The notes below the pieces were generated by a model. The model saw only the letters and a program-made list of their open reading frames with translations. It was not told where the DNA came from and did no database searches. A DNA stretch of 64,000 nucleotides from Macrostomum lignano (taxonomy: Eukaryota), in NCBI GenBank assembly GCA_002269645.1, contig NIVC01000304.1, forward strand, positions 62,001 through 126,000, in the 5' to 3' direction. Below, piece after piece: positions 2,376-56,867 of the stretch (its first letter is position 1; each line of letters opens with the position of its first letter). Position numbers and translations under genes: made by a program.

Positions 2376-5789
<3,414 letters not shown>

Positions 5790-17440: not shown

Positions 17441-18435
17441 AGACAACGAAGATTTAAAAAATTACTGAAGATAATTTTGACAAGTCCGAAAGACAAGTCC
17501 AAGTCCGACAAGTTCCGCAGCTTTAAACGTTTAGTCATGCCATCTAATCTAGGAATGTTCTGAGTCGGAGTTTCAGTTTAAAAGAATGCACCAACACTGT
17601 AGCTTTAGCCAGACTTCCTAATCTGGCTTTGCGTACACAAAGATCTGGCCCCATCATAAAACGGGCGGGCGGCATCAAAGGTAAATAATACTAGGAGGTA
17701 CAGAGGAGCAGAGTTAGACACTGGCGGGTTAATTTTCTTTGATCTAACGCCGACACAAACTATCGGGCTGAGTTGCACTCAGGGGGGGCGACTGAGCTCA
17801 CAAAACGAGATTGACCAGACTAGAAAGTTATACTCCCGGATCAAAGGAAAAACACTTTCTATTGCAGTTAAGCCGACAAGAATCAGAAAACCAGAAGGAA
17901 ATTTGATGTCATCAAAATGCTCAATCACATGTATCTAATAATGCCAGTTACAATAGCAATGCTTTTGAAGTAGAATTCAACTGCCATGTGTATTCAAACA
18001 CTAAACTAAGAACTAAGAGCTGAGTTAAGAAGGCATCCAGCTATAAAATGGATGCCAGAATTAGCTGGGATAATTGAGGGTGTATATAGCAACCCATAGT
18101 CCTAGTCAGCTGTAGATATATAGCTACACCTGAGCTGTTGGTTGCACATCTGGCCTAATTGGGGCCTAGTGGTTAAAAAACTGGCCCAATATTATAATAT
18201 ATCTGGCCCAATTGGATTGACCAGACTAGGCCAATCCCAATCAAAGGTAAGGTAAGGTCAATTTCAATTGGGGTAAATGTAATAAAAAAATCTACTTAAT
18301 AAATAGTAGCCTTATACTATTGCTACTTGTACATACATGCGCAACCCCCTGATTAACACTGGCCATGCAACTTACTTTTTGACCAAAAATGCGACTTACC
18401 TATGAAAGAAACCCTAAAGCAAAATCAACGCTTTT

Positions 18436-19980: not shown

Positions 19981-21779
19981 TAATTTAATCATAATACCCA
20001 ATATCTCCATGAAATTCTAGTCCATCAAGACTTAAATTGAGATTGAGATCCAAAAGATCTTTGATTTCCATACTTTTAATAATTCAAGTTAGAGGTATCA
20101 GTGGTTAGGGTTAGAGTTAACATCATTTCATTGTTCTTTCATTTCATTGTTATCCGTAGCCTCTTTACTGGGTATTCACCTGTACATTGAACCCTATTGC
20201 CGCCACCTCCAACATGGGGGTTTTAATTGAATTATATACAGAAGACATGTCAGAAATTAAAAGAATGTTTTATCTTGAATGCTGTGCCTTTTGTTTTTAT
20301 ATATAAAGCAAGAAACTGATATCCCTAAACTCAGTGTTATAAGATATTTCTAGCAATATAAGTCTTTCCTCTTAGAGTTTAAAAATCAAAGAACAATTAG
20401 CATTTGAAATTTACCAATTTCCTGACTGCTTGCCTAAGAGGCTCATAAGTTTGTTTATTGAATTTCACTGTGTAGCTAAAACACAGGGCCAATAATAAGA
20501 CTAATTGAATCTCAACATAGTCTTATCTATCTGTTTATACTGTACAACTACTATGTACACTCAGATTAAGCCCAATCTCCCCCTATTCCTAGGGAATCAT
20601 TAAGTTTAATTGCACCCCCAACATAGGGGGGAAAGTTATTTGCCTTATATGTAGAACATAGTATATGCACCTATCCCCTAAACCCAATATATATCTATTA
20701 TATTATTATTCATTATTATACACAGCTTTATTACATACCAAGCTAAAAAAGGCTAATGTTACCATAAAATTCTAGTTTGTAGAAGACTTTCTTAGTAAGT
20801 ATAGATAGGCCATTGATAATGATATAATCTAAGACAGTGTTTATCTATACAGTACATTCATAAGAATAATTTTTGTCTTATCTATATGTAGATCTTATCT
20901 TATCTACATGTTATAAAAATTATTTCTATCTTATCCATATAATATACTAGCAAGATAGTTGCTTATCTTCCTAAATATATTATATATAAAGAATACTTAA
21001 CTTTTTATCCACAAGGCACAATGACAAAATAGTCTGTCTTATCTTCTTCTAATAGATACTGTAAGAAAAAAATTAGTTTGTTACTTACAGTTTAATTATA
21101 ATATAACAATATAGTAGCTATCTTGTCAATGCCATATGGATAAGCAAAAAATTATTCTCATAAAATTAGTACTATAAGAATAGGACAGAAATGATTCTAA
21201 TAATATATGTATCATATTATGATATATCATATATTGTATCATATCAATTAATAAAGTTAATATATATATAATATGCAAACAAACTTTACAGAAAACATGA
21301 CAGTATAAGTTTAATTTGTTTATTTAAAAGTGTTTTAACTGGTCTATTATACTTTTTGTATAAGTCAGATGTATGTATCAATATTGAGATATCCTATAAT
21401 TGACCAAATATTATATACATTAGAATCTCTGAGTCAGCAACAACTTAAAATTATAGAATCTATTTTTTGCTTCATTAATTAATTTAAACAAGCTGTTGAA
21501 ACCCGCGGATTTTGAACCCGGGGAATTCCAATACCCGGAACTACTTTTGCATGTATTCTGAAATCTAAGGCCATACACAAACAAAAACTTGTTAATAGTT
21601 AGTAGGATAGAGGTAGACATAAAATGGAGCACATTCGTGTAAAATTAGGGTTTGAGACATTGTTGGCTGGGGTACTGCGCAGAATGTCAGGCAATGTCTG
21701 TCTGACTCTAAAACATATATTGCTAAACTCTGGTCTCTCCCTGACTCTCCCTACGTCCCTTGGATCCTTTAAAATTTCT

Positions 21780-22187
21780 ATCGTCTCTTTGTTTCCTCTC
21801 ATCTCTCTCGTCCCTCGTCTCTCCTCTCTCCTCTCTCCCCTCTTCTCTCGTATCTTCCCTCATCTCTCTTCTCTTTCATCTCTCTTATCTCATCTCTTGT
21901 CTCTTCTTTTCTCTCTCCTCTCCTCTCTCCTCTCTACTTTTTCGTTTTCTCTCTCCTCTCCTCTCTCCTCTCTCTCCCTCTCCTCTCTCCTCTCACCCCC
22001 TCTTCTTTCTTATCTTCCTTCTCCTTTCTATTCTTTTCTCTCTTCTCTTAACTCTCTCCTCTACTCTCTCATCTCTCCCCTCTTCTCTTGTCTCTTCCCT
22101 CACCTCTTTTCTCTCTCGTCTTTGCTCTCTCATCTTTCCTTTCTCTTCTTTTATCTTTTCTCTCTTATCTCTTCTCATTTCTCTCTG

Positions 22188-22275
<88 letters not shown>

Positions 22276-22895
22276 GTCTTTCTCTCTTATCTCTTCTCCT
22301 CTCTCTACTCTCTCCCCTCTCCATTCTCCCCTTTCCTCTCCCCTCTCCTCACTCACTTCTCTACCTTTGTCTCTCCTCTCTCCTCTCGTCTCTGTAACCT
22401 CTCCTCTGTTCTCTCTACTTTCCCATCTTTTATCTGTTCACTCTTGTCTCTGCTCTCTCATCCCCCTCTTTAATCTGGCATCTCTGTCTTATATGTTCTC
22501 TCACCTCTCTCCTCTGTACTCTTTTCTTTCCCCTCTTTTGACTCCTCACTTTCCTTTCTCCTTTCTTCTTTTCTCTTCTCTTCCCTTTTCTATACTCTGT
22601 CTCCCTCTCTTCTCTCACTCCACTCTCCTCTATCCGTTATCTCTCATCTCTCATTCCACCTCTCATCTCTACAACCTTAGAGATGTAGAGATGTATCTTT
22701 ATCTCTTCTCTCTTCCCTGTACTCTCTCATCTCTTCTTTCACCTGTTTCCTCTCTGCTCTCCTCTCTGCTGTCTCCTCTCTCCTCTCATCTGCAGCTCTC
22801 TGCTCTCTCATCTCTACTCTCTACTCTCGCTTTTCCTCTCTCCCCTCTTCTCTCCCTCTCTCTCATCGTCATCACCCCCTCATCTCTCCTATTAT
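21780..22895. repeat. CT-rich low-complexity tract including a (CT)n microsatellite
   Basis: About 1.1 kb that is almost entirely pyrimidine, with pure (CT)n around 22190-22270. Confidence 0.95.
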
Positions 22896-22901
22896 CTTTT
22901 A

Positions 22902-23685
22902 GGCTCATTCCATATAAGATGGACATATTTGGAAAATAGAAAAAAGTCAATATTTTTGCTTGCCATTGCCTAATTAGCCTATTTTTTTACCAAATGTTTA
23001 TATTGTGCAATATATAACCTAAGAATAAAGGAATGGTAAAATGTTGGATTAGTATGTTATCAATTGGCAAAAAGTCATTTTTGTAAAAATTTGGACATTT
23101 TTTGAAGCAAAAGACATCATTAAGATTTTGTACCTTTTAAAAACAAATAGAAAGCTTTTGAAGGTTGAAACAAACTATAGATAAAAGTATAGCACTTGCA
23201 TCATCAGATAAAAGCATTGGTGACCAAATAATCTATTATATTTTTAATGTATTAGTACCTCAAAGTTACTGAATTGACAGAAAAAAATATGTTACGACCA
23301 TAATGTTACGACCATAAGGCTGCCTTTTCTTTTGTATCTTTGTTGCCTTTTGAGTTTATATATTCTAATAAAAGAGTATGATTTCTAAAGATGTTCTTAG
23401 TCAAATTTTAAAAATGTATTGCAAAATATTAAAAATGAAAAATGTTATAAGACTTTTACCTTTTAGTTTCTATATGTCAAAAATCCTGTCGTTACGACCA
23501 TAAGTGTCATTTAAGGTTTAATAGCATCTATACTAATGATGATATCTATACGAAACTCTATAAATATATTCTAGACAAAATAATCTTTCATTTAAAATAT
23601 TGGTTTAGTATATTCTATTATTAGATTTCATTTTACAAGTAAAAATAACCTGTCATGTTACGACCATGCTTATATGGAATGAGCC
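22902..23685. mobile_element. Non-autonomous DNA transposon (MITE) copy 1, 784 bp
   Basis: 17-bp TIR GGCTCATTCCATATAAG / CTTATATGGAATGAGCC, 4-bp TSD TTTA, internal GTTACGACCAT repeats. A near-identical copy lies at 49565-50350. Confidence 0.92.
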
Positions 23686-31076: not shown

Positions 31077-34000
31077 TCAGCCAGTATATCCGCCGTTGCT
31101 GTTGCCGGCTTCAGTCGGCCTCGACTGCCGCAGATAATTTTCTGGCTGCTCATGCTGACGATACTGCTGCTGCGGCGGTGGCTGCTGACCTGCTTGCCTC
31201 TTTGGTGGATTTGCTCTACCAGAGTTTGACTCCATCGGAAAGTTCTCTCCATCTGACTGACTCCGAAAATAACACCTGTAGAGCAAGAAGCCGCTGCCAA
31301 TCAGCAGGCCAGCGCCGACAACGGAGAAGACCAAAATGAGTGCAACTGCCCAGGTTTCGAGGCCGCCTGCGTCCGGGTTCGGAGTCTCGGAAGGGAGGAT
31401 CGGAGTAGTAGGTGTAGTAGGTGCGGGTGTTGAGTCAGTGATTTCTGAATGATCGGTGGGACCTGTAGAGCTTGAGGACAAGGTAGAGTCATAATTAGTT
31501 GACTGGCCAGTCACCTGTGTTCCAGTAGAATCGGTCATCTCCGTCTGCGGCGTCGCCGTCTGTGGTGCCGTTGGTGTCTCCGTCGGTGCTTCTGTCGGTG
31601 TCGTCGGCGAGGGCGTAGGGAGGTCGTTGATGCAGTCAGGCGAGGCGACGCACGGCAGCGTCTGGTCCCAGAAGGCGCAGTCCAGTCCGCGGAGCGCGTG
31701 CTCAACGTAGTGAGGCGGCCAGCTGACGTTCCAGCCGCCGCTTCCAGAGTCGCGCAGCAGCAGCACCCGCCGGCTGTCGGCTCCGTAGGCCTCCCAGCTC
31801 ACGTTGCCGCTGTTGGCGAACTCGACGAGGCTGCGGACGAGGAAGCCCGACAGTTGGGCGCGCGCCTCGCCAAGCGGCTTGGAGGGTCTCGCAGGGCTGC
31901 CCAAGGCGTAGACGGCGTCATCCGCTGGAGTGGGAGTTAAGCGGTTGGAGGGGCTTTGGACACTTCAGTGAGAGGGAGTTAAGCGGTTGGAGGGGCTTTG
32001 GAGCACTTCAGTGAGAGGGAGTTAAGCGGTTGGCGGGGCTTTGGAGCACTTCAGTGAGTGGGAGTTAAGCAGTTGGGAGGGGGGTTTGGAGCACTTCAGT
32101 GAGTGGGAGTTAAGCGGTTGGGAGGGGGGGTTTGGAGCACTTATGTGAGTGGGAGCTAAGCGGTTGGGAGGGGGGGGGTTTGGAGCACTTCAGTGAGTGG
32201 GAGCTAAGCGGTTGACGGGGCTTTGGAGCACTTCAGTGAGTGGGAGCTAAGCGGTTGACAGGGCTTTGGAGCACTTCAGTGAGTGGGAGCTAAGCGGTTG
32301 ACGGGGCTTTGGAGCACTTCAGTGAGTGGGAGCTAAGCGGTTGACGGGGCTTTGGAGCTCTTCAGTGAGTGGGAGTTAAGCAGTTGGGAGGGGGGTTTGG
32401 AGCACTTCAGTGAGTGGGAGTTAAGCGGTTGGGAGGGGGGGGGGTTTGGAGCACTTCAGTGAGTGGGAGCTAAGCGGTTGACGGGGCTTTGGAGCACTTC
32501 AGTGAGTGGGAGCTAAGCGGTTGACGGGGCTTTGGAGCACTTCAGTGAGTGGGAGTTAAGCAGTTGGGAGGGGGGTTTGGAGCACTTCAGTGAGTGGGAG
32601 CTAAGCGGTTGACGGGGCTTTGGAGCACTTCAGTGAGTGGGAGTTAAGCAGTTGGGAGGGGGGGTTTGGAGCACTTCAGTGAGTGGGAGTTAAGCGGTTG
32701 ACGGGGCTTTGGAGCACTTCAGTGGGTGGGAGCTAAGCGGTTGACGGGGCTTTGGACACTTCAGTGAGTGGGAGCTAAGCGGTTGGCGGGGCTTTGGAGC
32801 ACTTCAGTGGGTGGGAGCTAAGCGGTTGACGGGGCTTTGGACACTTCAGTGAGTGAGAGCTAAGCGGTTGACGGGGATTTGTAGCACTTCAGTGAGAGGG
32901 AGCTAAGCGGTTGACGGGGCTTTGGAGCACTTCAGTGAGTGGCGATTTGCACTGGTTAACCAGTGCCTCAGTGCTAACCTGAGCGAGCTCATCCCACCTG
33001 CCTGGCTTCCCCGCTCCCCTCAGCCCCGCCTGCTCACAGAGGCTGGCGCCGACCAGCCGATCCCCGATTTCCTCGGCCGGCTCGGCGAGCAGGAAGCCGA
33101 AAACCTGAGCAGTGCTCAAAGCAGCCGCTCTGGCCATGAAGCTCCAGGTAGGACAGGTAAAGTGCCGATCGCCCAGCGCCCGCGACAGCAGCTGGGCCTC
33201 CTTGACGTCCCCGACGCCGGCGTCAGCGGTCGAGCTGGGGAATTCGGCGAAGCGGCGACTCGCGGCTTCCAGTCCGACCGAGGACAGCGACTCGCCGAAG
33301 CGGGGGAAGTGGCGCAGTGACTGGCCCAGGTGCTGTGGAAGGTGAGAGGAGTGACTGGCCCAGGTGCTGTGGGAGGTGAGAGGAGTGACTGGCCCAGGTG
33401 CTGTGGGAGGTGAGAGGAGTGACTGGCCCAGGTGCTGTGGGAGGTGAGAGGAGTGACTGGCCCAGGTGCTGTGGGTGGTGAGAGGAGTGACTGGCCCAGG
33501 TGCTGTGGGAGGTGAGAGGAGTGACTGGCCCAGGTGCTGTGGGAGGTGAGAGGAGTGACTGGCCCAGGTGCTGTGGGTGGTGAGAGGAGCGAGTGGCCCA
33601 GGTGCTGTGGGAGGTGAGAGGAGTGACTGGCCCAGGTGCTGTGGGAGGTGAGAGGAGTGACTGGCCCAGGTGCTGTGGGTGGTGAGAGGAGTGACTGGCC
33701 CAGGTGTTGTGGGAGGTGAGAGGAGTGACTGGCCCAGGTGCTGTGGGAGGTGAGAGGAGTGACTAGCCCAGGTGCTGTGGGTGGTGAGAGGAGTGACTGG
33801 CCCAGGTGCTGTGGGAGGTGAGAGGAGTGACTGGCCCAGGTGCTGTGGGTGGTGAGAGGAGTGACTGCCCAGGTGCTGTGGGAGGTGAGAGGAGTGCGGG
33901 ACTCAGCAGTGACTGGCCCAGGTGCTGTGGGAGGTGAGAGGAGTGCGGGACTCAGCAGTGACTGGGCCAGGTGCTGTGGGTGGTGAGAGGAGTGCAGGAC

Positions 34001-37000
34001 TCAGCAGTGACTGGCCCAGGTGCTGTAGGAGGTGAGAGGAGTGCGGGACTCAGCAGTGACTGGCCCAGGTGCTGTGGGAGGTGAGAGGAGTGCGGGACTC
34101 AGCAGTGACTGGCCCAGGTGCTGAGGGAGGTGAGAGGAGTGCGGGACTCAGCAGTGACTGGCCCAGGTGCTGTAGGAGGTGAGAGGAGTGCGGGACTCAG
34201 CAGTGACTGGCCCAGGTGCTGTAGGAGGTGAGAGGATTGCGGGACTCAGCAGTGACTGGCCCAGGTGCTGTGGGAGGTGAGAGGAGTGCGGGACTCAGCA
34301 GTGACTGGCCCAGGTGCTGTAGGAGGTGAGAGGAGTACGGGACTCAGCAGTGACTGGCCCAGGTGCTGTGGGTGGTGAGAGGAGTGCGGGACTCAGCAGT
34401 GACTGGGCCAGGTGCTGTGGGAGGTGAGAGGAGTGCGGGACTCAGCAGTGACTGGGCCAGGTGCTGTAGGAGGTGAGAGGAGTGCGGGACTCAGCAGTGA
34501 CTGGCCCAGGTGCTGTAGGAGGTGAGAGGAGTGCGGGACTCAGCAGTGACTGGGCCAGGTGCTGTGGGAGGTGAGAGGAGTGCGGGACTCAGCAGTGACT
34601 GGGCCAGGTGCTGTAGGAGGTGAGAGGAGTGCGGGACTCAGCAGTGACTGGCCCAGGTGCTGTAGGAGGTGAGAGGAGTGCGGGACTCAGCAGTGACTGG
34701 CCCAGGTGCTGTGCACCTCACCTCCAGCACGCGGTCCCGCGTCACGTTCAGGCCATCGGGCAGCAGCAGCCGCACCAGCGTGTTGCCGGGGGAGTCCACG
34801 CCGCCCAGCAGCAGCGGAACCGGCGGCAAGGCGTCCACCGACCACGGGTCGGACTTCAGGAAGTCGGCGTCCAGGGCGGGTCCGAAGGCGACGAAGGGCG
34901 GCTGGAGGCGGGCGACGTCGCGCTGGAAGTCTGCGGCCGCGCTGACGATTTCCGAGGAGGTGAGGTTGCGCAGGCAGTCCAGCAGCTCAGCGGGGGTCGA
35001 CTGGCTGCAGTTCAGGTAGCTGGCTGAGGAGTCGGAGGGGTGGATGAGCTGTGCAGTCTGGGAGATGAGTGCTGCAGCTCAGGTAGCTGGCTGAGGAGTC
35101 GGAGGGGAGGATGAGCTGTGCAGTCTGGGAGATGAGTGCTGCAGCTCAGGTAGCTGGCTGAGGAGTCGGAGGGGAGGATGAGCTGTGCAGTCTGGGAGAT
35201 GAGTGCTGCAGCTCAGGTAGCTGGCTGAGGAGTCGGAGGGGTGGCTGAGCTGTGCAGTCTGGGAGATGAGTGCTGCAGCTCAGGTAGCTGGCTGAGGAGT
35301 CGGAGGGGAGGATGAGCTGTGCAGTCTGGGAGATGAGTGCTGCAGCTCAGGTAGCTGGCTGAGGAGTCGGAGGGGAGGCTGAGCTGTGCAGTCTGGGAGA
35401 TGAGTGCTGCAGCTCAGGTAGCTGGCTGAGGAGGGGAGGGAGGATGAGCTGTGCAGTCTGGGAGATGAGTGCTGCAGCTCAGGTAGCTGGCTGAGGAGGG
35501 GAGGGGAGGATGAGCTGTGCAGTCTGGGAGATGAGTGCTGCAGCTCAGGTAGCTGGCTGAGGAGGGGAGGGGAGGATGAGCTGTGCAGTCTGGGAGATTA
35601 GTGCTGCAGCTCAGGTAGCTGGCTGAGGAGGGGAGGGGAGGATGAGCTGTGCAGTCTGGGAGATGAGTGCTGCAGCTCAGGTAGCTGGCTGAGGAGTCGG
35701 AGGGGTGGCTGAGCTGTGCAGTCTGGGAGATGAGTGCTGCAGCTCAGGTAGCTGGCTGAGGAGGGGAAGGAGGATGAGCTGTGCAGTCTGGGAGATGAGT
35801 GCTGCAGCTCAGGTAGCTGGCTGAGGAGTCGGAGGGGTGGCTGAGCTGTGCAGTCTGGGAGATGAGTGCTGCAGCTCAGGTAGCTGGCTGAGGAGTCGGA
35901 GTCGGAGGGGAGGCTGAGCTGACACCTGTGCAGTCTGGCAGATAATACTTGCGCGGACTGTGCTGAGTACAATCACAGTACTCAAAGTACTCCTAAACTG
36001 CAAGCAAGCGGGTATCTGCAGGTCTCACCTGTAAAACTTTTGTGCATCGCCCGCACTTCGTCTGGCATTGGCGACACCGCGAAGGGGGAGTTCGGCGAGC
36101 CCGACAGAAGGACGGCGCGCTGGAACTGCAGCGGCTCCGCCAGCAGGTGGAAGCCGACGGAGGCAGCGCCGGCCTCCACGCCCACCAGACTGATTTTGCT
36201 GGGGCTGCCGCCAAAAAAGCGCACGTTGTAGCGCACCCACTGGAGGGCCAGCGCCTGGTCTCGGAGGCCAAGGTTTGCGGGCACCGAGGCGTTTTGCAGC
36301 CACAGGAAGCCCAGAGCACCTGGGAATCAGCAGGCATTGCGACTGAAGCTGGCAGATCCCACCTGTGCTACTGCAGCCCGGAGCACCTCAGATCCCATCA
36401 CCTGCCATTGCTGCTGCAGCTCACCAAAGGCCTGAGCACCTCAGATCCCATCACCTGCCATTGCTGCTGCAGCTCACCAAAGGCCTGAGCACCTCAGATC
36501 CCATCACCTGCCATTGCTGCTGCAGCTCACCAAAGGCCTGAGCACCTCAGATCCCATCACCTGCCATTGCTGCTGCAGCCCACCAAAGGCCTGAGGACCT
36601 CAGATCCCATCATCTGCCATTGCTGCTGCAGCTCACCAAAGGCCTGAGCACCTCAGATCCCATCACCTGCCATTGCTGCTGCAGCTCACCAAAGGCCTGA
36701 GCACCTCAGATCCCATCACCTGCCATTGCTGCTGCAGCCCACCAAAGGCCTGAGGACCCTCTCCTCACTTACCATCTCCTCATCCTCTCCTCACCTACTC
36801 CTCACCCTCTCCTCACCCACTCCTCACCCTCTCCTCACCCTCTCTTCACCCTCTCCTCACCCTCTCCTCACCCTCTCCTCACCTTCTCCTCACCCTCTCA
36901 TCACCCACTCCTCACCCTCTCCTCCTCACCCTCTCGTCTCCCTCTCGTCACCCTCTGCTCACTTACCCTCTCCTCACCCTCTCCTCACCCACTCACCCAG

Positions 37001-40000
37001 TCTGTAGGCGACCGTCACCACCACCGCATCGACCTGGTCCAGCACGTGGCTGCCCCGCCAGCGGTCATCGAAGGCGTCGCCAGTCTGAAAGAAGCCGCCG
37101 TGAAGGAACACCAAGACGGGGAGGTCATTGACGCCCCGGTCCGAGTGCGCGGGTGTCCACAAGTTCAGGTAGAGGCAGTCCTCGGAGGTCGCGAGCGGCC
37201 CCGGCTGCGGACATGCGGGCTTCGGGCTTATCGCTAGGAAGTCCTCGCCTGCAGGGTAAAAGGAAGTCGGTCGTGGATCAACGCTTAGTTGCTAGGGCAG
37301 GACTCAATGTGGGACTCAATGTGGGACTCAATGCGGGACTCAATGCGGGACTCAATACGGGACTCAATACGGGACTCAATACGGGACTCAGTACGGGACT
37401 CAATACGGGACTCAATGCGGGACTCAATACGGGACTCAATGCGGGACTCAATGCGGGACTCAATACGGGACTCAATCCGGGACTCAATGCGGGACTCGAG
37501 GCTGGTAGCGGCAGCTCACCGAACGGATCCGCCGGCTCCGGAACAGCAAAGCGCTTCCCTCCGATGGGAGGCTTGGCGTAGGGCAGGCCGAGAAACTGCG
37601 TCATCACTTTGCCAGCGGGGGTGCGGATCGTCTGGCCGAACGTCCTGCCCAGCCCGAGAATATTCACGCTGTAGTTCCGCAGCACCGTGTTCGAGAACGG
37701 CTGCGCACCTCCTGGCGAGATTCGCGGTGGCTGAGGCGGCGGCGGAGGCTGCGGAGGAGGCGGCGAGGCGGACAGGTTGCTGGCCAGCGACATCTCGGCC
37801 GACCAGAGCGGACAGCGGCCGGGCTCGAAGGCGAAGCCGCCGCTTGTCAAATTGACGCCGGTTTTGGCGCCGAAGCGCAGGAAATCAAAGGCGCCGGCGC
37901 TGCTGGAGGGCCAGCCGGGACTGGGAGCTGAAAGAAGCAATGAAAGCGGCTCTTGTAGCAGCAACTCTGAGCAGGAATTTGAAGCAGCAACTCTGAGCAG
38001 GCATTTGAAGCAGAAACTCTGAGCAGGCATTTGAAGCAGCAACTTTGAGCAGCAACTCTGAGCAGGAATTTGAAGCAGCAACTCTGAGCAGGCATTTGAA
38101 GCAGCAACTCTGAGCAGGTATTTGAAGCAGCAACTTTGAGCAGCAACTCTGAGCAGGCATTTGAAGCAGCAACTCTGAGCAGGCATTTGAAGCAGCAACT
38201 CTGAGCAGGCATTTGAAGCAGCAACTTTGAGCAGCAACTCTGAGCAGGCATTTGAAGCAGCAACTCTGAGCAGCAACTCTGAGCAGGCATTTGAAGCAGC
38301 AACTCTGAGCAGGAATTTGAAGCAGCAACTTTGAGCAGCAACTCTGAGCAGGAATTTGAAGCAGCAACTCTGAGCAGGCATTTGAAGCAGCAACTCTGAG
38401 CAGGCATTTGAAGCAGAAACTCTGAGCAGGCATTTGAAGCAGCAACTTTGAGCAGCAACTCTGAGCAGGAATTTGAAGCAGCAACTCTGAGCAGGCATTT
38501 GAAGCAGCAACTCTGAGCAGGAATTTGAAGCAGCAACTCTGAGCAGGCATTTGAAGCAGCAACTCTGAGCAGGCATTTGAAGCAGCAACTTTGAGCAGCA
38601 ACTCTGAGCAGGCATTTGAAGCAGCAACTCTGAGCAGGCATTTGAAGCAGCAACTTTGAGCAGCAACTCTGAGCAGGCATTTGAAGCAGCAACTCTGAGC
38701 AGGCATTTGAAGCAGCAACTCTGAGCAGGCATTTGAAGCAGCAACTTTGAGCAGCAACTCTGAGCAGGCATTTGAAGCAGCAACTCTGAGCAGCAACTCT
38801 GAGCAGGCATTTGAAGCAGCAACTCTGAGCAGGAATTTGAAGCAGCAACTCTGAGCAGGCATTTGAAGCAGCAACTCTGAGCAGGAATTTGAAGCAGCAA
38901 CTCTGAGCAGGCATTTGAAGCAGCAACTCTGAGCAGGCATTTGAAGCAGCAACTCTGAGCAGGCATTTGAAGCAGCAACTCTGAGCAGGCATTTGAAGCA
39001 GCAACTCTGAGCAGGCATTTGAAGCAGCAACTTTGAGCAGCAACTCTGAGCAGGAATTTGAAGCAGCAACTCTGAGCAGGAATTTGAAGCAGCAACTCTG
39101 AGCAGGAATTTGAAGCAGCAAATCTGAGCAGGCATTTGAAGCAGCAACTCTGAGCAGGCTTTTGAAGCAGCAACTCTGAGCAGACAGTTGAAGCAGCAAC
39201 TCTGAGCAGGCATTTGAAGCAGCAACTCTGAGCAGGCATTTCAATCACACAACTGCCTGAAGAACTCACCTCCACTAGCAGTAAAATCGACCAGGTGCTG
39301 CATCATGATTCTGGACAGGCTCCTGTGCTCAGCTGAGTAGTTCGCTCGCACCAGCGGCTCTCCCAGCAGCACCTTCGCATCATTCGCCACCGACAGTGCA
39401 GCTGCGGGATCGCCATCCTCATCGTGCAGGTAGACGAACACCCGGCCTGAGCCAATCAGGTCGTTGGCGGCCTCCCAAACCGGACAGACGGCGCCAAAGT
39501 CGGACAGCGCGCGGGCCAAAATGTGGCGGACGCGGCCGCCGTAGGCGAAGTGCGGCCAGTCGGACAGAGTCAGCCGGAGGTAGCGGCGCCCGCTGACCGA
39601 GGCGTTTCGGCCGGCCGAGTGGAGGCGGGGAAACTGGCCGAACTCGCGGTCCAGGATCTGCAAAGTGGCCAGGTGGGTCAGGTGGGTGACAGCTGCAAAG
39701 TGGCCAGGTGGGTCAGGTGAGTGACAGCTGCAAAGTGGCCAGGTGGGTCAGGTGAGTGACAGCTGCAAAGTGGCCAGGTAGGTCAGGTGAGTGGCAGCTG
39801 CAGTGGCCAGGTGGGTCAGGTGAGTGACAGCTGCAGTGGCCAGGTGGGTCAGGCAGCTGCATGGCTGGAACGGCACTGCATGAAGGGATCAGGGAGCTCA
39901 GCTCAGCCCCAGCTCAGAGCAGCGCGCCACTCACGGTCTCAAATGCCGTCTGGTCGAGCGCGCCCCAGTCGGCGCCCTGCACGCGAAGCGCCAGCTCCGC

Positions 40001-40972
40001 CAGCGCCGGGCCGACGCCAGTTCGGACGCCGACCATCAGGGAGCCGTTGAAGGCGCCAGAGCGCCAGAGCGCGTCCGGCAGCAAGGAGACGTTGAAGGAC
40101 GGCGCGAACCGACCAGCGCCGTCGCCGTAGTCCCGCCGGAGCAGCGACTCAGCATCCAGCAGGTCCTTCAGCGGCTTGCTCCGCAGGCAGTCGAGCGGCA
40201 GGCGGCCTTCATCTCCGATGCCGCAGCTCAGGCTGGCAGCCAGCTGGCGGTCCAGGGCGGCGGCCACTTCGACGGAGGCCGACCAGCCTAGCGGCGCGGC
40301 GATGGAGCCGCTCATCATGACGACGCGCGAGAATCCGCCGCTTCCAACCGCGTGCAGGCCGACAGCGGCAGCGGCGGCGCCGTGGCCGGCCAGCGTCACT
40401 CGCGCCGGGTCGCCGCCGAATCGGTGCAGCTGGTCGCGCAGGAACTCCAGCGCCAGGCGCTGATCCTCAAGGCCGTTGTTCTGCCCTGCCGGCACGTTGC
40501 CAAGGACGCCGAATCGACTTCCGATGGTTGCCATGACGACACTTGTGCCGATAGCGTCGCCGACTTCGTGGCCGAGGCTGTCATTGAAGTCGGAGGAGCC
40601 GTCGAGCAGCAGCGCCAGGACGGGCAGCGGATCAGCGGGGGCAAGGTCGGGAGTTCGAATGCTGAGGCGGAGCAAGTTCTCCTCGGGGTTGGCGGCCTCC
40701 TCGCCGGTCAGCCGGCAGTCGGAGCGGCTGAAGTTGAACGGCTGCGGCTTGGCGAACCGCCTGTCGCCGATTGGCGGCTCGGCGTACGGCACCCGCAGGA
40801 AGCGGAGCAGGCGGCTGCCGAGACCGTCGGGCATCGTCAGATTGAACTCGGAGCCGACGATCGAGCAGCTTCCGATGGTCACATTGGCCTCTCCGACCGG
40901 CTGCGGCTGCCCTCGGGCCGCCGTCAGCGTCAGGGCGACGACGGCGAGTGCGGCAATGGCGGCTCGGTACAT
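31077..40972 (-). CDS. Type I membrane protein with two tandem catalytically inactive carboxyl/cholinesterase-like domains, 8 exons, ~1273 aa
   Basis: Exons 40972-39935, 39657-39270, 37927-37520, 37248-36997, 36319-36029, 35023-34722, 33332-33038, 31924-31077 (3822 nt, GT-AG, phases consistent). Signal peptide MYRAAIAALAVVALTLTAARG. Domain 1: FLRVPYAEPPIGDRRF, DQRLALEFLRDQLHRFGGDPARVTLAGHGA. Pro linker. Domain 2: FLGLPYAKPPIGGKRF, SEDCLYLNLWTP, LHGG, NLGLRDQALALQWVRYNVRFFGGSPSKISLVGVEAG, FTCP. Then a Thr/Pro stalk, TM WAVALILVFSVVGAGLLIGSGFLLY and a Q-rich tail. Confidence 0.9.
31930..32945. repeat. ~43-nt intronic minisatellite (GGGAGCTAAGCGGTTGACGGGGCTTTGGAGCACTTCAGTGAGT)
   Basis: Fills esterase-gene intron 31925-33037 and abuts the acceptor. 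Confidence 0.95.
33317..34712. repeat. 34-nt and 49-nt intronic minisatellite containing the 3' splice site
   Basis: Unit GTGACTGGCCCAGGTGCTGTGGGAGGTGAGAGGA (+/- GTGCGGGACTCAGCA). On the minus strand it reads CTCTCACCTCCCACAG|CACCTGGGCCAGTCAC. Confidence 0.95.
35013..35930. repeat. ~67-nt intronic minisatellite containing the 3' splice site
   Basis: The minus unit contains CTCCTCAG|CCAGCTACCTGAGCTGCAGC, which nearly matches the true exon start CCAGCTACCTGAACTGCAGC. Confidence 0.95.
36375..36996. repeat. 53-nt minisatellite (36375-36760) plus an ~11-nt CTCACCCTCTC array (36765-36996)
   Basis: Two arrays fill intron 36320-36996. The second repeats the donor-like GGTGAG motif on the minus strand. 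Confidence 0.9.
37300..37497. repeat. 12-nt intronic repeat (GGGACTCAAT(A/G)C)
   Basis: Lies inside intron 37249-37519, after donor G|GTGAGC at 37520. Confidence 0.9.
37955..39245. repeat. 26/15-nt intronic minisatellite (GAAGCAGCAACTCTGAGCAGGCATTT)
   Basis: Fills intron 37928-39269 and explains the Cys-rich ORFs at 37847-39275. Confidence 0.95.
39658..39860. repeat. 35-nt intronic minisatellite ending in the acceptor
   Basis: The minus unit CTGTCACTCACCTGACCCACCTGGCCACTTTGCAG ends in the same TTTGCAG used as the real acceptor at 39658. Confidence 0.9.
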
Positions 40973-44886: not shown

Positions 44887-47136
44887 TAATAGATTGCACC
44901 TGTCCTAATGGCCAGCTGTGCAACCGACAGCTCAGCCGCAGCTATTGCAAGGCGCATCTGAAGGCTGCGTACGGCTGTTCAGTCCAAGGACTGGGGGGTC
45001 ACCACACAGCCTCAATTACCCCAGCTAATGCTGGCACCCATTTTACAGCTGGGTGAACTGAAGCAATGCAGAGTTAAGTGTCTTGCTCAAGGACACAAAT
45101 TGTTCCGAATGGGTCAGGAATCGAACCCCCGACCTTTGAGTCGTGAGTCCGGCGCTCTAACCGCTAGCCAAAAACCATTCGTAATTTTATGAGTAGAAAA
45201 TTATTGTTAATTTAAAACGCACTCTTGCTGATTATAATCTTACACTGATCATACAAAGTCATTTCAAGTCTTACGCTGACACAGCTGAATAAAAAGGTTA
45301 ATTTAATACTCTTTTCAGCTACTGACAAACATGCGCATTAACTACTGAACACTAGCTGAAATCACCGCTTCTTGGAAAGCTTCCCATAAGACTCAATGGT
45401 TTGACTGGGTGTATAATATAAGATCTATGGCCTATGGATAGAAAATGACACCCAAAAATGACTTCGGGGACGAAAAGATGTTCGCTTGCACCGCTGAAAA
45501 CTAATCCTCAGTGGTCTACGAGTATGGACAAAGATCTATGGGTTCGAGCCTTGAGCTAAGACGGCTATTGACAACAGAATTTTGAATTAGTAATGACTCA
45601 CGGCGTGCAAAACTGCGGTCGCGAAGCCGGCTGGACAACTAAAAGACCGTCGTCAACAGGCAGACGCTGGTGCTGCTGATGATGCCGCCGTTTGCGCCCC
45701 AAGTCGGCAATTGGGGCGGCTACAGCGGCGGCAGGTCTTTGCTGCTGCTGTTGCTGCAACAGAGCTGCCGGCGCAGGCGACAGTCGCTGCTGCTTCTGAT
45801 GGCCGCCGCTATAATCGTCGCGCCGACGCGGCCTGGCCCCGGCGGATAAGTAGAGAAAATATTCGTTGCTAAGCGACGCCTTGGAGGGCCGGCCTCGGCC
45901 GCGCTTCTGTATGGGAAAGGGCAGAGAGCCGAGTCGGCCGCCGAGTTTGGCCATTGTGCGGCACTGCCGGGCCAAGCAGTCCACGCTGTCCAGCTTGAAG
46001 CTCGGGTAGCGCTTCTTGGCCTGGCAGACCTCGCAGCGGCCGCAGTCCGCCTTCAGCCGACAGGCCTCGCAGTAGCCGCACCGTTTCGGGAATCGGAAAA
46101 CGCTGGTAGACGCGAAGTCGTCTTCGTCCAGCAGCGAGTTCTGGTCCTGCTCAACGTCCGACTCCATCTGCGGCGGCCGGAAACCGGACGTCTCTAGCTC
46201 GTCGTCGGTGGCCGACTCGTCCTCGGCCGGCAGGAGCATCTCCTCTTCAACGGCGATATCGTCGGCGTCAACAACAACAGCTTCGGCTTCGTCTTCGTCA
46301 ACATCGACGTCGCTAACGACAGCGCCGAGAGCGGCAGCGGCTGCGGCGGCGGCGGCGGCAGACGGGCTGGACAGCAGCGAGGGCGGATCGGGAACGACAA
46401 CAATGCCGTTGTTGCCACCACCACCGCCGCTGCCTCCACCGTCGGGGACCAGCTCGGCTGACACGTCGTCGATTGAATCGTCCAAAGCTTCATCGACTAT
46501 AGCTTCGTCGTTGGCATCGTTGCTAATTTGGCGAATCGGCGACTGCCGCGCACGTCGCCTGCCGCGCCGTCGTGCAGTGTCCGGCGACGAATCTGGCTGA
46601 GCAGGTTCTGCTCGGCGACTCTGCTGCCCGCCGCGCTGCCGGCGCTGCTGCCGCCCTGACGGCGACCCACCGCGTCCGTTCTGCAGCGTCGAAGCAGGCC
46701 CGTCTGCTTTAGAGCCGTCTTGCTGGTTCTTTACATTCCGAGCCTTTCTCCTGGTTGCAGACTCTGCTGGACTGCTGTTGCTGCTTTTAGAAGCCTCGCT
46801 GGCGTCACGCTTACGCGTGGCCGACTGTTTGCCCCTGCGCCTATGCTTGGCATCTGGCTTGCTGTTAGCGGTTGGCGATGCCGCCGGTTTGTATTGCACA
46901 GCTATGCGGCGATTTCGCTTGCGACAGGCCTCGCAATAATAAGCAACGATGCGCTCCGCCAGGCTGGCCGTGACACTGACGCAGTCGCCGTGGAACCATT
47001 CCTCGCAGCTGTCGCAGGCGATCATGAACCTGGTGCTGTCGGTAGACCGGCACAGGCAGTACACTGGCTTAGGCGGTTTAGCCGGCCTCGAACTTGTCCG
47101 AGGGGCAGCAGAGGACATGTGAACGGCTTTCTGCAT
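44461..47136 (-). CDS. CXXC1: PHD + CXXC zinc-finger protein, CXXC1/CFP1-like, 2 exons, ~606 aa
   Basis: Exons 47136-45602 and 44746-44461 (phase 2, GT-AG). N-terminal PHD PVYCLCRSTDSTRFMIACDSCEEWFHGDCV...YYCEAC, acidic region, CXXC KRCGYCEACRLKADCGRCEVCQAKKRY...CLARQC, AT-hook-like KRGRGRP. The start may extend to an acceptor near 47219. Confidence 0.75.
44822..45170 (-). mobile_element. tRNA-derived CORE-type SINE with (TTA)n tail, in the CXXC1-like intron
   Basis: Minus: A box TGGCTAGCGGTTAGAGC and B box GGTTCGATTCC. TGTGTCCTTGAGCAAGACACTTAACTCT...CAGCTGTAAAATGGG resembles the MIR/CORE domain. 3' (TTA)n tail at 44822-44890. Confidence 0.85.
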
Positions 47137-49379: not shown

Positions 49380-51600
49380 AAAAAGCAGTGTCACAGGGCA
49401 TGCTTCAGAGCCTGGGTGCAAACAAAGGCCACACCACCAGCAGAGTCCAGGGCACCAGCGTCGGCCAGCAGGCAGTCAATGAAACGCCAAGTTTGGGCCT
49501 GGCCACACCAGTAGGGTGCCTGCAGCATTAGCAGCAGCACCTCTTGCACTAGCTGCGGGCAGTAGGCTCATTCCATATAAGATGGACATATTTGGAAAAT
49601 AGAAAAAAGTCAATATTTTTGCTTGCCATTGCCTAATTAGCCTATTTTTTTACCAAATGTTTATATTGTGCAATATATACAATCTAAGAATATAGGAATG
49701 GTAAAATGTTGGGTTAGTATGTTATCAATTGGCAAAAAGTCATTTTTGTAAAAATTTGGACATTTTTCGAAGCAAAAGACATCATTAAGATTTTGTACCT
49801 TTTAAAAACAAATAGAAAGCTTTTGAAGGTTGAAACAAACTATAGATAAAAGTATAGTACTTGCATCATCAGATAAAAGCATTGGTGACCAAATAATCTA
49901 TTATATTTTTAATGTATTAGTACCTCAAAGTTACTGAATTGACAGAAAAAAATATATTACGACCATAATGTTACGACCATAAGGCTGCCTTTTCTTTTGT
50001 ATCTTTGTTGCCTTTTGAGTTTATATATTCTAATAAAAGAGTATGATTTCTAAAGATGTTCTTAGTCAAATTTTAAAAATGTATTGCAAAATATCAAAAA
50101 TGAAAAATGTTATAAGACTTTTACCTTTTAGTTTCTATATGTCAAAAATCCTGTCGTTACGACCATAAGTGTCATTTAAGGTTTAATAGCATCTATACTA
50201 ATGATGATATCTATATGAAACTCTATAAATATATTCTAGACAAAATAATCTTTCATTTAAAATATTGGTTTAGTATATTCTATTATTAGATTTCATTTTA
50301 TAAGTAAAAATAACCTGTCATGTTACGACCATGCTTATATGGAATGAGCCAGTAGGACTTGGTGCGGATGATGTGGCCTGCCAGCTGGTCGCTGAACTTG
50401 CAGCAGTTCACTTGGATGGGCCAGGCTGGTGCGGCAATAGAGTGCCGCATTAGTGATCCACTCGTGGCTGATCTTAAAGGTGGCGCATAGCAGGCCAGCA
50501 TGCACCACATTGACTTGCTGTTTGAGCAAATCCGTCAGCATCCAGGTCTTGGCATTGTACAACAGGATGATCTCGACCACCACCTAGAACAGCGCTGCCC
50601 TCTGGCGGTCAGGTAGGGCCTTGGACTGCAGGACCACCCTCACAGAGCAAAAGGTAGCCCAAGCAAGCCCGCGGCAATGCCACAGATCTTTGCAGACGTC
50701 AGGTACCAGACTGCCAAGGAAGACGAACTGCTGACAATGCAGAAGCTCCGTTACCTGCCCACCAGCACCTTGACAGAAAATTGTGGCCTCGATGTCGCCC
50801 TGCACACAGAGCACAATGGTCTTTGTGTTGACCACCAGGGTGATGCTTGCTGCAGTGCTACTGGCACTGAGCACCCTCTATGGTCGAGGACAGCAGGGCA
50901 AGGTCATCAGCATAGCCAACCACACTGAGCCATTTCTCTAGTTGATGTTGACCCATGCGTTGCCACAGTAGGAAGCCATCTTTGTCAATGGGAAGAGCAG
51001 TTTGTAGCACCCAGTCAAGCACCAAGACAAACAGGAAGGGCACTAGAGTGTCCCCTTGGAGCACCCCAGAGGATGTCTCAAAGGAGTCCAACAGGCCATC
51101 CGGCATCATCACAGCTGCTCTTGTAGTACAGTACAATGCCATTATGGCAGAGATCAGCTGTTCTGGTACATGATATGCATGGAACACATGTGGGAGTGCA
51201 GCCCTTGCAACCAAGTTGAATGCCTTCATGAAGTTAATGAAGACAACAATCAGGTCCAACTGGCGCGTGTGTGCCTCCTCAATGATTTGGCGAAGAGCTA
51301 AGACCTGCACTAGCATACCACAATAGGGCCAAAACCCATTCTACTCAGGTCGCAGGTAGGGATCCAGTATGGGTTGCAACCACGATAGCAGCATCCGGTT
51401 GAACAACTTTGCAGCATAGGATTGCAGGCAGATGCCTTGGTGCTCATCTAGCCATGTAGTGCCCAGCTTTTTTGGAATGGCAATGATGTGCACCATGGTC
51501 CACTTGGTAAGTGTCATTTCACCACAGTTTAATACTGTATATATAGTATGCATCAAGGAGTTGGCAAAGTTCTTTTGGTATGTTTAACATAGCAGTGCTA
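49380..51600 (-). mobile_element. 5'-truncated, frameshifted non-LTR retrotransposon (RTE-type RT), interrupted by a MITE
   Basis: RT motifs GICLQSYAAKLFNRMLL, VFINFMKAFN, GVLQGDTLVPFLFVLVLD, YADDLALLS, LLYNAKTWML, AGHIIRTKSY|CPQLVQEVLLL. The frame continues across the MITE at 49565-50350. Confidence 0.92.
49565..50350. mobile_element. Non-autonomous DNA transposon (MITE) copy 2, 786 bp
   Basis: Same 17-bp TIR as 22902-23685, with 4-bp TSD AGTA (49561-49564, 50351-50354). Confidence 0.92.
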
Positions 51601-56331: not shown

Positions 56332-56867
56332 ACGTAGCCAGGTCATCTCTGCATGTACTTGAAATGAAAATAAGATCTTACATTATCTATTTAATCCTAG
56401 TCTGTGAGGCAAACTAACATGGGCTAAGTCAGAATTCGTCACTACTCGTCTGGAAATCTGGAAAGCTGCTGAGCAAAACACTCTTTAGATGGCCGAATCG
56501 ATGACGCAAAAAATATTTCGAGTTTTAATTGCAACGTTCGTCTGACAGAGAGAGCCCCCCCCCCCCCGGAACAGTCTTCCCCTTCTCACCCAAGCTCTCT
56601 AATTGTGGAGTAATCTCTCACGCAGGCTGACTGCTCAAACCATCTGCTCCGTCAGAAATCCAGGTGGAGGCAGGTGGATGCCTGCTGTCGGAGAGTTTCT
56701 AAAACCGAACAAAAACCGAGAGCGGAAATTTCGCAAATCACTGCATGATTGAACTGCCGCGCCCACCTGCTGCGTTCTGCGTCTCTCGGCTTTCAGAGTC
56801 TTACCTTCGCTGAGACTGCAGGTCCATAGGAAAGAAATTTTCCTATGGACCTGCCTGGTGCTGGTGC

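Follow-up and report, generated by a model that had tools for sequence, protein, structure and literature searches.

A Macrostomum lignano gene predicted to encode a membrane-anchored glycoprotein with two tandem non-catalytic cholinesterase-like domains

In the flatworm Macrostomum lignano we identified a gene that is probably transcribed and encodes a type I glycoprotein of about 1230-1273 aa, in which two tandem COesterase domains without catalytic function may serve as binding modules at the cell surface. The gene lies on the minus strand of the window, a stretch of 64,000 nucleotides of contig NIVC01000304.1 to which all positions refer; an Rfam scan of this 64-kb window gave no match. 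Rebuilding the locus from the sequence yielded eight exons between 40972 and 31077 that join into an ORF of 3822 nt, corresponding to 1273 aa. Every intron is of the GT...AG type, the phases are consistent across the model and the stop codon is located at 31079-31077, which bears out the phase-consistent eight-exon gene described in an earlier note on this DNA. The protein consists of a signal peptide, a first COesterase domain (D1), a Pro linker, a second COesterase domain (D2), a Ser/Thr/Pro stalk, a transmembrane (TM) helix and a tail of 66 aa.

Exon 1 (39935..40972, minus strand as all following features) contains the start codon and encodes the signal peptide (aa 1-21) as well as two thirds of D1 from its N-terminus onwards, with the dead nucleophile elbow GHGAA at 40387-40373 and the acid position VRTGVG at 40027-40010. 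D1 continues in exon 2 (39270..39657), where the His position reads SVAN--DAK (39393-39373), and ends in exon 3 (37520..37927) with GRCPLWS. The same exon holds the Pro-rich linker of 24 aa, ASPPPPQPPPPPQPPRISPGGAQP (37769-37698), and the N-terminus of D2, FLGLPYAKPP. Exon 4 (36997..37248) encodes the shortened omega loop C624-C636, EDCLYLN and the oxyanion-hole region HGGFF of D2. It is followed by exon 5 (36029..36319) with the nucleophile elbow GVEAG (36182-36168), in which Glu takes the place of Ser, and by exon 6 (34722..35023) with the acid position GGVDSPG (34805-34785), in which Pro replaces Glu. Exon 7 (33038..33332) covers D2 as far as GASL with Leu at the His position, and exon 8 (31077..31924) comprises the C-terminus of D2, the stalk (31619-31353), the TM helix (31352-31278) and the cytoplasmic tail (31277-31080, 66 aa) before the stop codon. 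The seven introns span 31925..39934 (277, 1342, 271, 677, 1005, 1389 and 1113 nt) and each is largely occupied by a minisatellite of its own, the periods ranging from 11 to 67 bp. The exon 6 acceptor in use is the last of nine identical copies within the minisatellite of intron 5.

A Pfam COesterase scan, for which two hits had been expected, returned two full-length PF00135 domains, and only COesterase and overlapping hydrolase families were matched. D1 scores 156.8 bits (E 1e-45, profile positions 24-486 of 515) and D2 299.7 bits (E 6e-89, positions 9-501 of 515) at a gathering cut-off of 27, so that the two-domain match is not a matter of chance. The motifs reported previously were found again, GHGAA at aa 196-200, GVEAG at aa 742-746 and GASLSDD at aa 988-994 across the exon 7/8 junction. 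When the domains are aligned with AChE/BChE by HMMER, the triad positions are changed from S to G, E to V and H to N in D1, and from S to E, E to P and H to L in D2. For D2 this was also obtained by an HMM-column read-out; for D1 the automated read-out shifts the acid and His columns by at least one residue and gives E and V in the window copy, and no placement of the D1 alignment produces a Ser-acid-His triad. With all six triad residues replaced, the claim that both domains are catalytically dead is upheld, and proper alignment to AChE/BChE, which might have restored a triad, restores none in D1 or D2. The nucleophile substitutions and the exchange of His for Leu in D2 are also present in both homeologous copies and in older paralogs. 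Residual catalysis via the Glu at the nucleophile position of D2 was rejected, since its His and acid positions are lost as well. Moreover, the omega loop of D2 is reduced from 26 to 11 residues, and the AChE segment ...GTEMWNP... with the choline-binding Trp falls opposite a gap. D1 has no omega loop, and the disulfide of this loop is lost as the second Cys of the first loop is missing. The Cys positions of the second and third disulfide loops of AChE/BChE are kept in both domains; the pairing suggested by the alignment would be 250-262 and 404-514 in D1, and 624-636 (the shortened first loop), 798-809 and 953-1074 in D2. As judged from the sequence, both domains are non-catalytic and the protein is not an active carboxyl- or cholinesterase.

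Two collinear loci, about 98% identical, are present in the assembly Mlig_3_7, and their collinearity with the window extends over about 36 kb. Seven of seven splice junctions are kept in these homeologous loci at an exon identity of 95-99.7%. The donor of exon 1 (GACC/gtgagt) is the same in both, and the junctions of exon 3 are used identically in their transcript-based models. Their products, BOX15_Mlig025559g1/g3 (PAA63626.1, PAA79323.1; UniProt A0A267EQ91, A0A267FZZ8), show 94% protein identity at 100% coverage and share the seven introns and the order D1-linker-D2-stalk-TM-tail with the window gene. They and the sister genes Mlig005467g1/Mlig007046g1 (PAA63630.1, PAA79327.1), which have another stalk, another TM helix and a tail of 25 aa, are either homeologous to the window gene or recent duplicates of it. 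The protein collection does not contain the window copy itself. In GenBank the products of Mlig025559, Mlig005467 and Mlig007046 are named only 'hypothetical protein', and these identifiers were not found in paper texts or in the searchable supplementary tables of four M. lignano papers. In M. lignano the gene is part of an expanded family, with at least five near-identical copies (PAA63626.1, PAA79323.1 and others carry two PF00135 hits) as well as older paralogs. Diverged paralogs of 30-42% identity keep the order D1-D2 and the dead motifs GHG.. in D1 and G-x-[E/D]-A-G in D2; layout and motifs are shared by A0A1I8I8B3, A0A1I8G704, PAA63630.1 and PAA79327.1. Among paralogs the linker varies from 24 aa, Pro-rich, to about 35 and about 55 aa. 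Other M. lignano models shorter than 1200 aa either have no D2 C-terminus or are frameshifted.

The GenBank annotation of Mlig_3_7 originates from a genome-guided RNA-seq assembly with StringTie/TACO/TBONE (PMC5730564), and the homeologous loci are therefore transcribed. This transcript support comes from homeologs of about 98% identity, and RNA-seq reads multi-map between such copies. Two neighbouring esterase genes might have been joined by mistake; among the multi-COesterase models of the databases there are many such fusions, which contain internal signal peptides, for example Lineus XP_064631732. Here, however, a single exon (37927-37520) runs in frame and without a stop codon from the last part of D1 through the linker into the beginning of D2, as the earlier note had argued against two adjacent genes. 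No internal hydrophobic segment appears in the hydropathy profile, and D1 and D2 are joined in the same way, in one ORF, by the RNA-seq-derived models of two other loci. We therefore regard the fusion as real and rejected a joining artefact, which is extremely improbable.

In the hydropathy profile there are only two hydrophobic segments, with peaks at aa 1-19 and about 1180-1207. They correspond to the N-terminal signal and to a TM helix at aa ~1183-1207, in agreement with the single-pass type I topology proposed before. All 17 of the 17 N-X-S/T sequons are located in the ectodomain, and the stalk consists of 61% S/T/P. The C-terminus reads ...NGGYTG with a final Gly that is not hydrophobic; the absence of a PDZ-type C-terminus was thus noted correctly, and we found no known signalling or anchoring motif and no recognisable PDZ ligand in the cytoplasmic tail. 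Exon 8 contains an optional in-frame, exitron-like intron at 31386..31514 (CAG/GTGACT...TTCCGAG/ACT) corresponding to 43 aa of the stalk. Both homeologous loci have transcript-derived models from which it is spliced out, and its length in the three loci (129, 120 and 129 nt) is always a multiple of three. The deposited BOX15_Mlig025559g1/g3 models are without these 43 aa, and the deposited full-length homeolog is 1232 aa long. Since the homeolog models remove this piece of 129 nt, the number of coding exons in the mature mRNA may be nine, or the stalk may exist in two isoforms. The eight-exon ORF stands, but the exon count of the earlier note may have to be extended.

Among the three recent copies D1 has a dN/dS of 0.12-0.30, indicating purifying selection, and the tail is nearly invariant. 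For D2 the ratio is 0.74-1.2, calculated from only 6.5-10.5 synonymous versus 22.5 non-synonymous changes; on these few changes D2 may be relaxed or diversifying. Such values would also be expected if the gene were a redundant, decaying member of an amplified family in a neopolyploid genome, with D2 drifting towards a functionless pseudogene. The number of near-identical copies and older paralogs fits such a decay, as do the large recent duplications which two reports describe for the M. lignano genome (PMC5730564; PMC10733133). However, the 3.8-kb ORF and 14 of 14 splice sites are intact in each of the three independent loci, purifying selection acts on D1 and the tail, D2-type domains with G-x-[E/D]-A-G are still present in old paralogs of 32-42% identity, and the homeologous loci are transcribed according to the annotation source. 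Decay of the gene is hence quite unlikely.

In comparison with known proteins, AChE/BChE are the best PDB sequence matches (D2 186 bits, D1 117 bits) and the best structural matches of D2 of an AlphaFold2 model of a paralog (TM ~0.8). They differ in possessing an intact triad and an omega loop with the choline-binding Trp, whereas the M. lignano protein has neither and is TM-anchored. Neuroligins resemble it in a non-catalytic COesterase-fold ectodomain, a Ser/Thr-rich stalk and one TM helix in type I orientation; neurotactin, gliotactin and glutactin resemble it in the non-catalytic COesterase-fold ectodomain. All four have one such domain, whereas the M. lignano protein has two, and the PDZ-binding C-terminus of neuroligins is not found in it (GGYTG). 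With its non-catalytic cholinesterase-like ectodomain and membrane anchor it has the features of cholinesterase-like adhesion molecules. Orthology to neuroligin was rejected, since AChE-like proteins score higher (185-208 bits versus 99 bits for a neuroligin-like weevil protein), the M. lignano clade does not group with neuroligin-like sequences in a neighbour-joining (NJ) tree and two domains are present.

In NJ trees the D1-types group with 96%, the D2-types with 95% and all M. lignano domains together with 95% bootstrap support; after Dayhoff recoding the values are 81, 91 and 78. From these domain trees we infer that D1 and D2 arose by internal domain duplication in the flatworm lineage and that the whole two-domain gene was duplicated afterwards. 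Word-indexed searches and a search of representative proteins recovered no orthologs beyond M. lignano, and the argument for long-term constraint therefore rests on paralogs within the species. The representative-protein search used an 894-aa UniProt model of the same family as query. Nearly all entries retrieved by the word-indexed searches, whether queried with the full protein or with D1 by itself, were from M. lignano, so that these searches are uninformative on other Macrostomum species.

Proteins with a signal, two COesterase domains and a TM helix are predicted in sea urchins, starfish, hemichordates, a nemertean and a bivalve, all 'uncharacterized'. Both nucleophiles are lost in Diadema XP_071500051, Lytechinus XP_054767789 and Lineus XP_064622620; Acanthaster XP_022079595/XP_022100211, Saccoglossus XP_006825066 and Glandiceps XP_077983973 combine an active with a dead domain, Mactra KAL4226755 has two active domains and Styela XP_077968891 has four domains. 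These proteins share the overall layout but are not orthologous. Common ancestry with the echinoderm and hemichordate two-domain proteins was rejected, since pairing of the M. lignano D1 with the ambulacrarian D1, or of the D2 domains, has 0% bootstrap support and D1 and D2 of M. lignano are more closely related to each other than to any other domain (95%). The best non-flatworm matches of both domains are generic AChE-like proteins. The trees thus point to convergent tandem duplication in the flatworm and the other invertebrates. Literature phrase searches found no paper describing a tandem cholinesterase-like or COesterase family. The earlier remark that no characterised family with this layout is known therefore stands, but its rarity was overstated. 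Double-domain orthologs that are already described, which would speak against novelty, were encountered only in the weak form of unannotated database entries.

For structure prediction we used as AlphaFold2 target a paralog of 42% identity to the window protein, together with an alignment of 43 two-domain proteins from other animals and two M. lignano homeolog models. Both domains were predicted with a pLDDT of 80-97, the linker had low confidence and pTM was 0.59. With an alignment of single-domain homologs D1 of the paralog fell below a pLDDT of 50, because every homolog aligned to D2. Given the low-confidence linker and a pTM of only 0.59, the paralog model does not support a fixed D1-D2 packing. 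Cholinesterase-like domains such as those of cholinesterase and neuroligin dimerise via a four-helix bundle of alpha3(7,8)/alpha10 (PMC5943944), and D1 and D2 might pack in the same way, as the earlier note proposed, to form a receptor that is a covalent 'single-chain dimer'. A linker of 24-55 aa is long enough in principle, and several independent origins of membrane proteins with two COesterase domains would fit an advantage of a fixed dimer. On the other hand, linker length and composition vary among paralogs, and the paralog model is without confident inter-domain geometry, although pLDDT and pTM weigh little in either direction. We consider such packing possible but doubtful. Somewhat more speculative still, and in our view unlikely, is that the tandem dead domains represent a covalent pseudo-dimer and a new class of surface recognition receptors, invented separately in flatworms, ambulacrarians, nemerteans and molluscs because a cholinesterase-type dimer fixed within a single chain would offer a novel composite surface for binding.

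The recruitment of an enzyme fold to protein binding is a textbook theme, exemplified by neuroligin, neurotactin, gliotactin and the ChEL domain of thyroglobulin. To our knowledge, all characterised non-catalytic cholinesterase-like proteins have a single domain and act as non-covalent dimers. By analogy with the four examples, the M. lignano protein would sit at the cell surface, where its two tandem non-catalytic domains, joined by the flexible Pro-rich linker of 24 aa, may bind proteins or ligands in adhesion, recognition or scaffolding instead of acting as an enzyme. The Ser/Thr/Pro stalk, of the O-glycosylation type, would keep the domains clear of the membrane, and the chain ends in a short Gln/Pro-rich tail lacking a recognisable PDZ ligand. 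Alternatively, the ectodomain could mainly be a shed or secreted non-catalytic binder, such as an ester or amine sink, or a folding or dimerisation module. The C-terminal ChEL of thyroglobulin is non-catalytic and serves as a chaperone or dimerisation module (PMC5943944). Thyroglobulin, however, is secreted, contains many TG repeats and has one ChEL domain at its end, and Pfam detects no TG repeats in the M. lignano protein. The acidic residue at the nucleophile position of D2 is kept in all paralogs and could bind a cation, stalk length varies via the optional intron, and a sister gene swaps stalk, TM helix and tail. Nevertheless, both domains have lost the omega-loop segment that forms the choline-binding site, the protein has a TM helix and a conserved tail, and no cleavage site or cargo domain was identified in it; Pfam matches only COesterase. 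We therefore hold a shed or purely structural ectodomain to be very unlikely and favour, by analogy, a role in adhesion or ligand binding.

The immediate significance is modest, since the gene is lineage-specific and close copies are already deposited. RNAi is routine in M. lignano. Together with established transgenesis (PMC5730564) this makes the function testable in the animal itself. The gene indicates that an animal can hold two dead cholinesterase-like domains in one chain and expand this arrangement into a gene family. The same layout appears to have arisen independently in several invertebrate phyla and is apparently undescribed in the literature. If D1 and D2 pack like a cholinesterase dimer, these proteins would be natural single-chain dimers and useful for studying how binding surfaces are built.

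When the minus strand was translated in three frames from 31.0 to 41.2 kb of the window, eight coding blocks appeared with repeat-filled sequence between them. Each exon boundary was read directly in the DNA, placing exon 1 at 40972-39935, exon 2 at 39657-39270, exon 3 at 37927-37520, exon 4 at 37248-36997, exon 5 at 36319-36029, exon 6 at 35023-34722, exon 7 at 33332-33038 and exon 8 at 31924-31077, all on the minus strand. All introns of the gene start with GTGAG and end with a pyrimidine-rich tract and AG. Phases agree throughout, and the spliced coding sequence comprises 3822 nt (1273 aa). The rebuilt coordinates are the same as those of the earlier note, including its key exon at 37927-37520. 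The fusion of two domains in one ORF claimed there was recovered as well, as this exon carries the C-terminus of the first COesterase domain (D1, GRCPLWS), a 24-aa Pro-rich linker and the N-terminus of the second (D2, FLGLPYAKPP) in a single open frame.

The exact protein is absent from the protein collection searched. The deposited M. lignano matches to the full protein, with 94% identity and 100% coverage, are BOX15_Mlig025559g1 (PAA63626.1, 1234 aa) and g3 (PAA79323.1, 1232 aa), both named 'hypothetical protein'. All eight exons are present in both homeologous loci of GCA_002269645.1 (Mlig_3_7) at 95-99.7% nucleotide identity and with identical splice-site contexts. Since both loci align collinearly with the window across about 36 kb (94-98% identity), upstream PHD/zf-CXXC gene included, the window represents a third homeologous or allelic copy in a recently duplicated genome. 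This neighbouring gene, a CFP1/CXXC1-like gene with a PHD finger and zf-CXXC (45598-47136, minus strand), is found on the same strand about 4.6 kb upstream, and both homeologous loci retain it in synteny. Mlig_3_7 was annotated in GenBank from a genome-guided RNA-seq transcriptome assembly using StringTie, TACO and TBONE (PMC5730564). Therefore, the one-ORF join of D1 and D2 in the homeologs is transcript-derived and not an ab initio prediction; this support comes from the homeologs, and short reads multi-map among the 98% identical copies. An artefactual fusion of genes is essentially excluded.

The eight exons of the earlier note were all found, but the stalk contains an extra in-frame intron, so that the number may be nine. 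The deposited homeolog models lack 43 aa of the stalk although the DNA is present in both loci, and the transcript-based homeolog models both annotate the corresponding piece of the last exon (31514-31386, minus strand) as an intron. All three loci share its borders, CAG/GTGACT and TTCCGAG/ACT, and its length (129, 120 and 129 nt) is in each case a multiple of three. The piece is thus an additional in-frame, coding-capable intron, because of which the gene may have nine exons or else two stalk isoforms; we regard it as a candidate for an exitron or for an isoform differing in stalk length.

Minisatellites with periods of 11-67 bp, a different one in each case, make up most of each of the seven introns (31925-39934), and the splice site itself falls inside several of the repeat units. 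In intron 5 the acceptor is present, along with the opening 10 nt of exon 6, in nine exact copies; acceptor-like sites number 32 in intron 6, and cactttgcag occurs four times in intron 1. Donor-like GTGAG motifs number 23 in intron 4. Of these repeated sites, the in-frame product results only from the acceptor that comes last or the donor that comes first. The repeat families are the same in all three loci with very different copy numbers (intron 2: 1342, 81 and 263 nt; intron 5: 1005, 746 and 137 nt), and despite this the exons of the window remain 95-99.7% identical to those of both homeologs. Large minisatellite or low-complexity arrays are also found elsewhere in the window (1341-2083, 10001-10954, 16453-17446, 21600-22940 and 56793-57215), where they show up as long spurious ORFs in several frames. 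These arrays fit the tandem-repeat content of 15% reported for the M. lignano genome (PMC5730564). The GC content of the window is strongly bimodal, with about 0.55-0.63 in genes and repeat-filled introns versus about 0.31-0.38 in intergenic sequence. Besides, the minus strand carries an exon for an RGS domain (13809-14735; PF00615, E 3e-14), an adjoining 420-aa ORF with no Pfam match (10807-12069) that may belong to the same gene, and a reverse-transcriptase fragment (50858-51316; RVT_1, E 6e-10), a retroelement remnant.

The protein belongs to the COesterase fold. As the earlier note had expected, Pfam detected two full-length COesterase domains (D1 with 157 bits, D2 with 300 bits) and, overlapping hydrolase families aside, no other domain. 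D1 and D2 share only 29% identity. Hydropathy analysis identified exactly two hydrophobic segments, aa 1-19 and about 1180-1207. The ectodomain carries every one of the 17 N-glycosylation sequons and all but one of the 15 cysteines. The stalk comprises 89 aa with about 61% Ser/Thr/Pro, and the cytoplasmic tail of 66 aa ends in GGYTG, without a PDZ ligand, as previously noted.

The catalytic positions were assigned from HMMER alignments to solved AChE and BChE structures. In D2 the nucleophile motif GESAG is changed to GVEAG (Ser to Glu), the acid (...DEG...) to GGVDSPG (Glu to Pro) and the His motif GVPHGYE to GASLSDD (His to Leu). In D1 the corresponding sequences are GHGAA (Ser to Gly), VRTGVG (Glu to Val) and SVAN--DAK (His to Asn with two residues deleted). 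An automated HMM-column read-out agreed for D2 and for the D1 nucleophile and placed the D1 acid and His columns slightly shifted; neither approach restored a triad in D1 under any column placement. Moreover, D2 has a gap opposite the AChE segment with the choline-binding Trp and only 11 residues between the first cysteine pair (26 in AChE), and D1 lacks this cysteine loop together with the second cysteine of the pair. Since the triad residues are replaced and the choline-binding segment or loop is missing, neither domain can be a conventional esterase, and the cholinesterase gorge is kept in neither. The two dead domains of the earlier note were thus confirmed.

We searched 1.84 billion representative proteins exhaustively with phmmer, using as query an 894-aa UniProt model of the same family, and the best D1-type matches were from M. 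lignano only. They include A0A1I8I8B3 (1013 aa, 42% identity), which has the same D1-linker-D2-stalk order, and a frameshifted version of it. Also among them is A0A1I8G704 (3380 aa, UniProt), in which three or more D1-D2 units follow one another, carrying the dead motifs GHG.. and G-x-[E/D]-A-G; it is probably several tandem two-domain genes fused by the predictor, or else a giant multi-domain protein. A sister gene outside the window, on the two Mlig_3_7 contigs that also carry the homeologs, NIVC01001827.1 and NIVC01000640.1 (PAA63630.1, Mlig005467g1; PAA79327.1, Mlig007046g1), encodes an ectodomain with at least 90% identity, but its stalk, TM helix and tail (25 aa) are entirely different, which suggests that the membrane-proximal part was swapped as a module. 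Across the paralogs G-H-G is kept in D1 and G-x-[E/D]-A-G in D2. Therefore, both nucleophiles had been lost before the family diversified, with a conserved acidic residue at the D2 position.

In an all-against-all BLAST by domain, D1 paired with D1 and D2 with D2 among the paralogs, followed by generic AChE-like proteins. A neighbour-joining tree (48 sequences, 502 columns), which is no definitive phylogeny, grouped the D1-types with 96%, the D2-types with 95% and all eight M. lignano domains with 95% bootstrap. Amino-acid composition as the cause of this grouping was ruled out, since the groups survived Dayhoff-6 recoding (81%, 91% and 78%, respectively) and a less GC-biased paralog still grouped with the window domains. 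The trees are most simply explained by an internal duplication of the domain in the flatworm lineage, after which the whole two-domain gene would have been duplicated. Nei-Gojobori dN/dS among the three near-identical copies was 0.12-0.30 in D1, 0-0.33 in the combined stalk, TM and tail and 0.74-1.2 in D2, the last being noisy because of few changes (6.5-10.5 synonymous, 22.5 non-synonymous). The D2 value could reflect relaxation or diversification. A redundant copy that is drifting is a less likely, rival reading of the gene; that full-length D2-type domains persist in paralogs of 32-42% identity speaks against simple decay.

Domain packing was modelled on the paralog A0A1I8I8B3 in place of the window protein. 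With an alignment of single-domain homologs D2 was confident, superposing on BChE/AChE with a target-normalised TM of about 0.8, but D1 was not. A second alignment, of 43 two-domain proteins from other animals and two M. lignano homeolog models, brought both domains to pLDDT 80-97, so that the model confirms D1 as a complete alpha/beta-hydrolase domain. The linker remained at 35-58 and pTM at 0.59, and the model gave no confident fixed D1-D2 geometry. A single-chain pseudo-dimer of D1 and D2, proposed earlier as a possible mimic of the cholinesterase dimer, would refine the main account more than replace it. The linker and pTM values and the varying linker length among paralogs (24, about 35 and about 55 aa) lean against a rigid arrangement, although the signal is weak.

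The layout is not confined to flatworms. Among 274 COesterase-matching proteins, mainly the best 150 representative matches plus matches of the word-indexed searches, 61 had at least two long COesterase domains, many being fused tandem genes with internal signal peptides. The clean signal-COE-COE-TM subset comprises dead-dead (Diadema XP_071500051, Lytechinus XP_054767789, Lineus XP_064622620), active-dead (Acanthaster XP_022079595 and XP_022100211, Saccoglossus XP_006825066, Glandiceps XP_077983973) and active-active proteins (Mactra KAL4226755) and one with four COE domains (Styela XP_077968891), all named 'uncharacterized' or 'hypothetical'. In the echinoderm and hemichordate proteins d1 paired with d1 and d2 with d2 in BLAST; the neighbour-joining tree did not recover these clades (24% and 4% bootstrap). 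Membership of the window protein in an ambulacrarian two-domain family was rejected, as neither BLAST nor the tree (0% bootstrap) linked those domains specifically to the flatworm ones. The layout is thus both recurrent and convergent. The earlier statement that no characterised family is known holds insofar as our literature searches found no paper describing this layout, but the layout is already visible in databases, unannotated, in several invertebrates. On a marine metagenome contig of Tara Oceans, probably eukaryotic (ERZ976255 k127_1732594, 1554-6435), back-to-back ORFs encode three or more COesterase domains, of which the first two have active-type nucleophile elbows (GTSAG, GESAG).

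The window protein is no cholinesterase because triad and gorge are lost, nor is it a neuroligin, given its two domains, its lack of a PDZ motif and its closer resemblance to AChE/BChE. In mode of working the cholinesterase-like adhesion molecules, a model for non-enzymatic binding (PMC5943944), would be nearest, although the window protein, unlike any characterised member, has two dead domains. The gene, its architecture, loss of catalysis, topology and family conservation are near-certain. A shed binder or chaperone-like module is a less likely rival to a non-enzymatic binding role at the cell surface, and that role by itself we rate at roughly even chances; the overall account, architecture and binding role taken together, we regard as moderately probable. 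Close copies of the protein have already been deposited without functional annotation. By analogy with cholinesterase-like adhesion molecules, the window protein may be a cell-surface, non-enzymatic binding protein, in which a glycosylated stalk would hold two esterase-fold modules above a short tail without a PDZ ligand.
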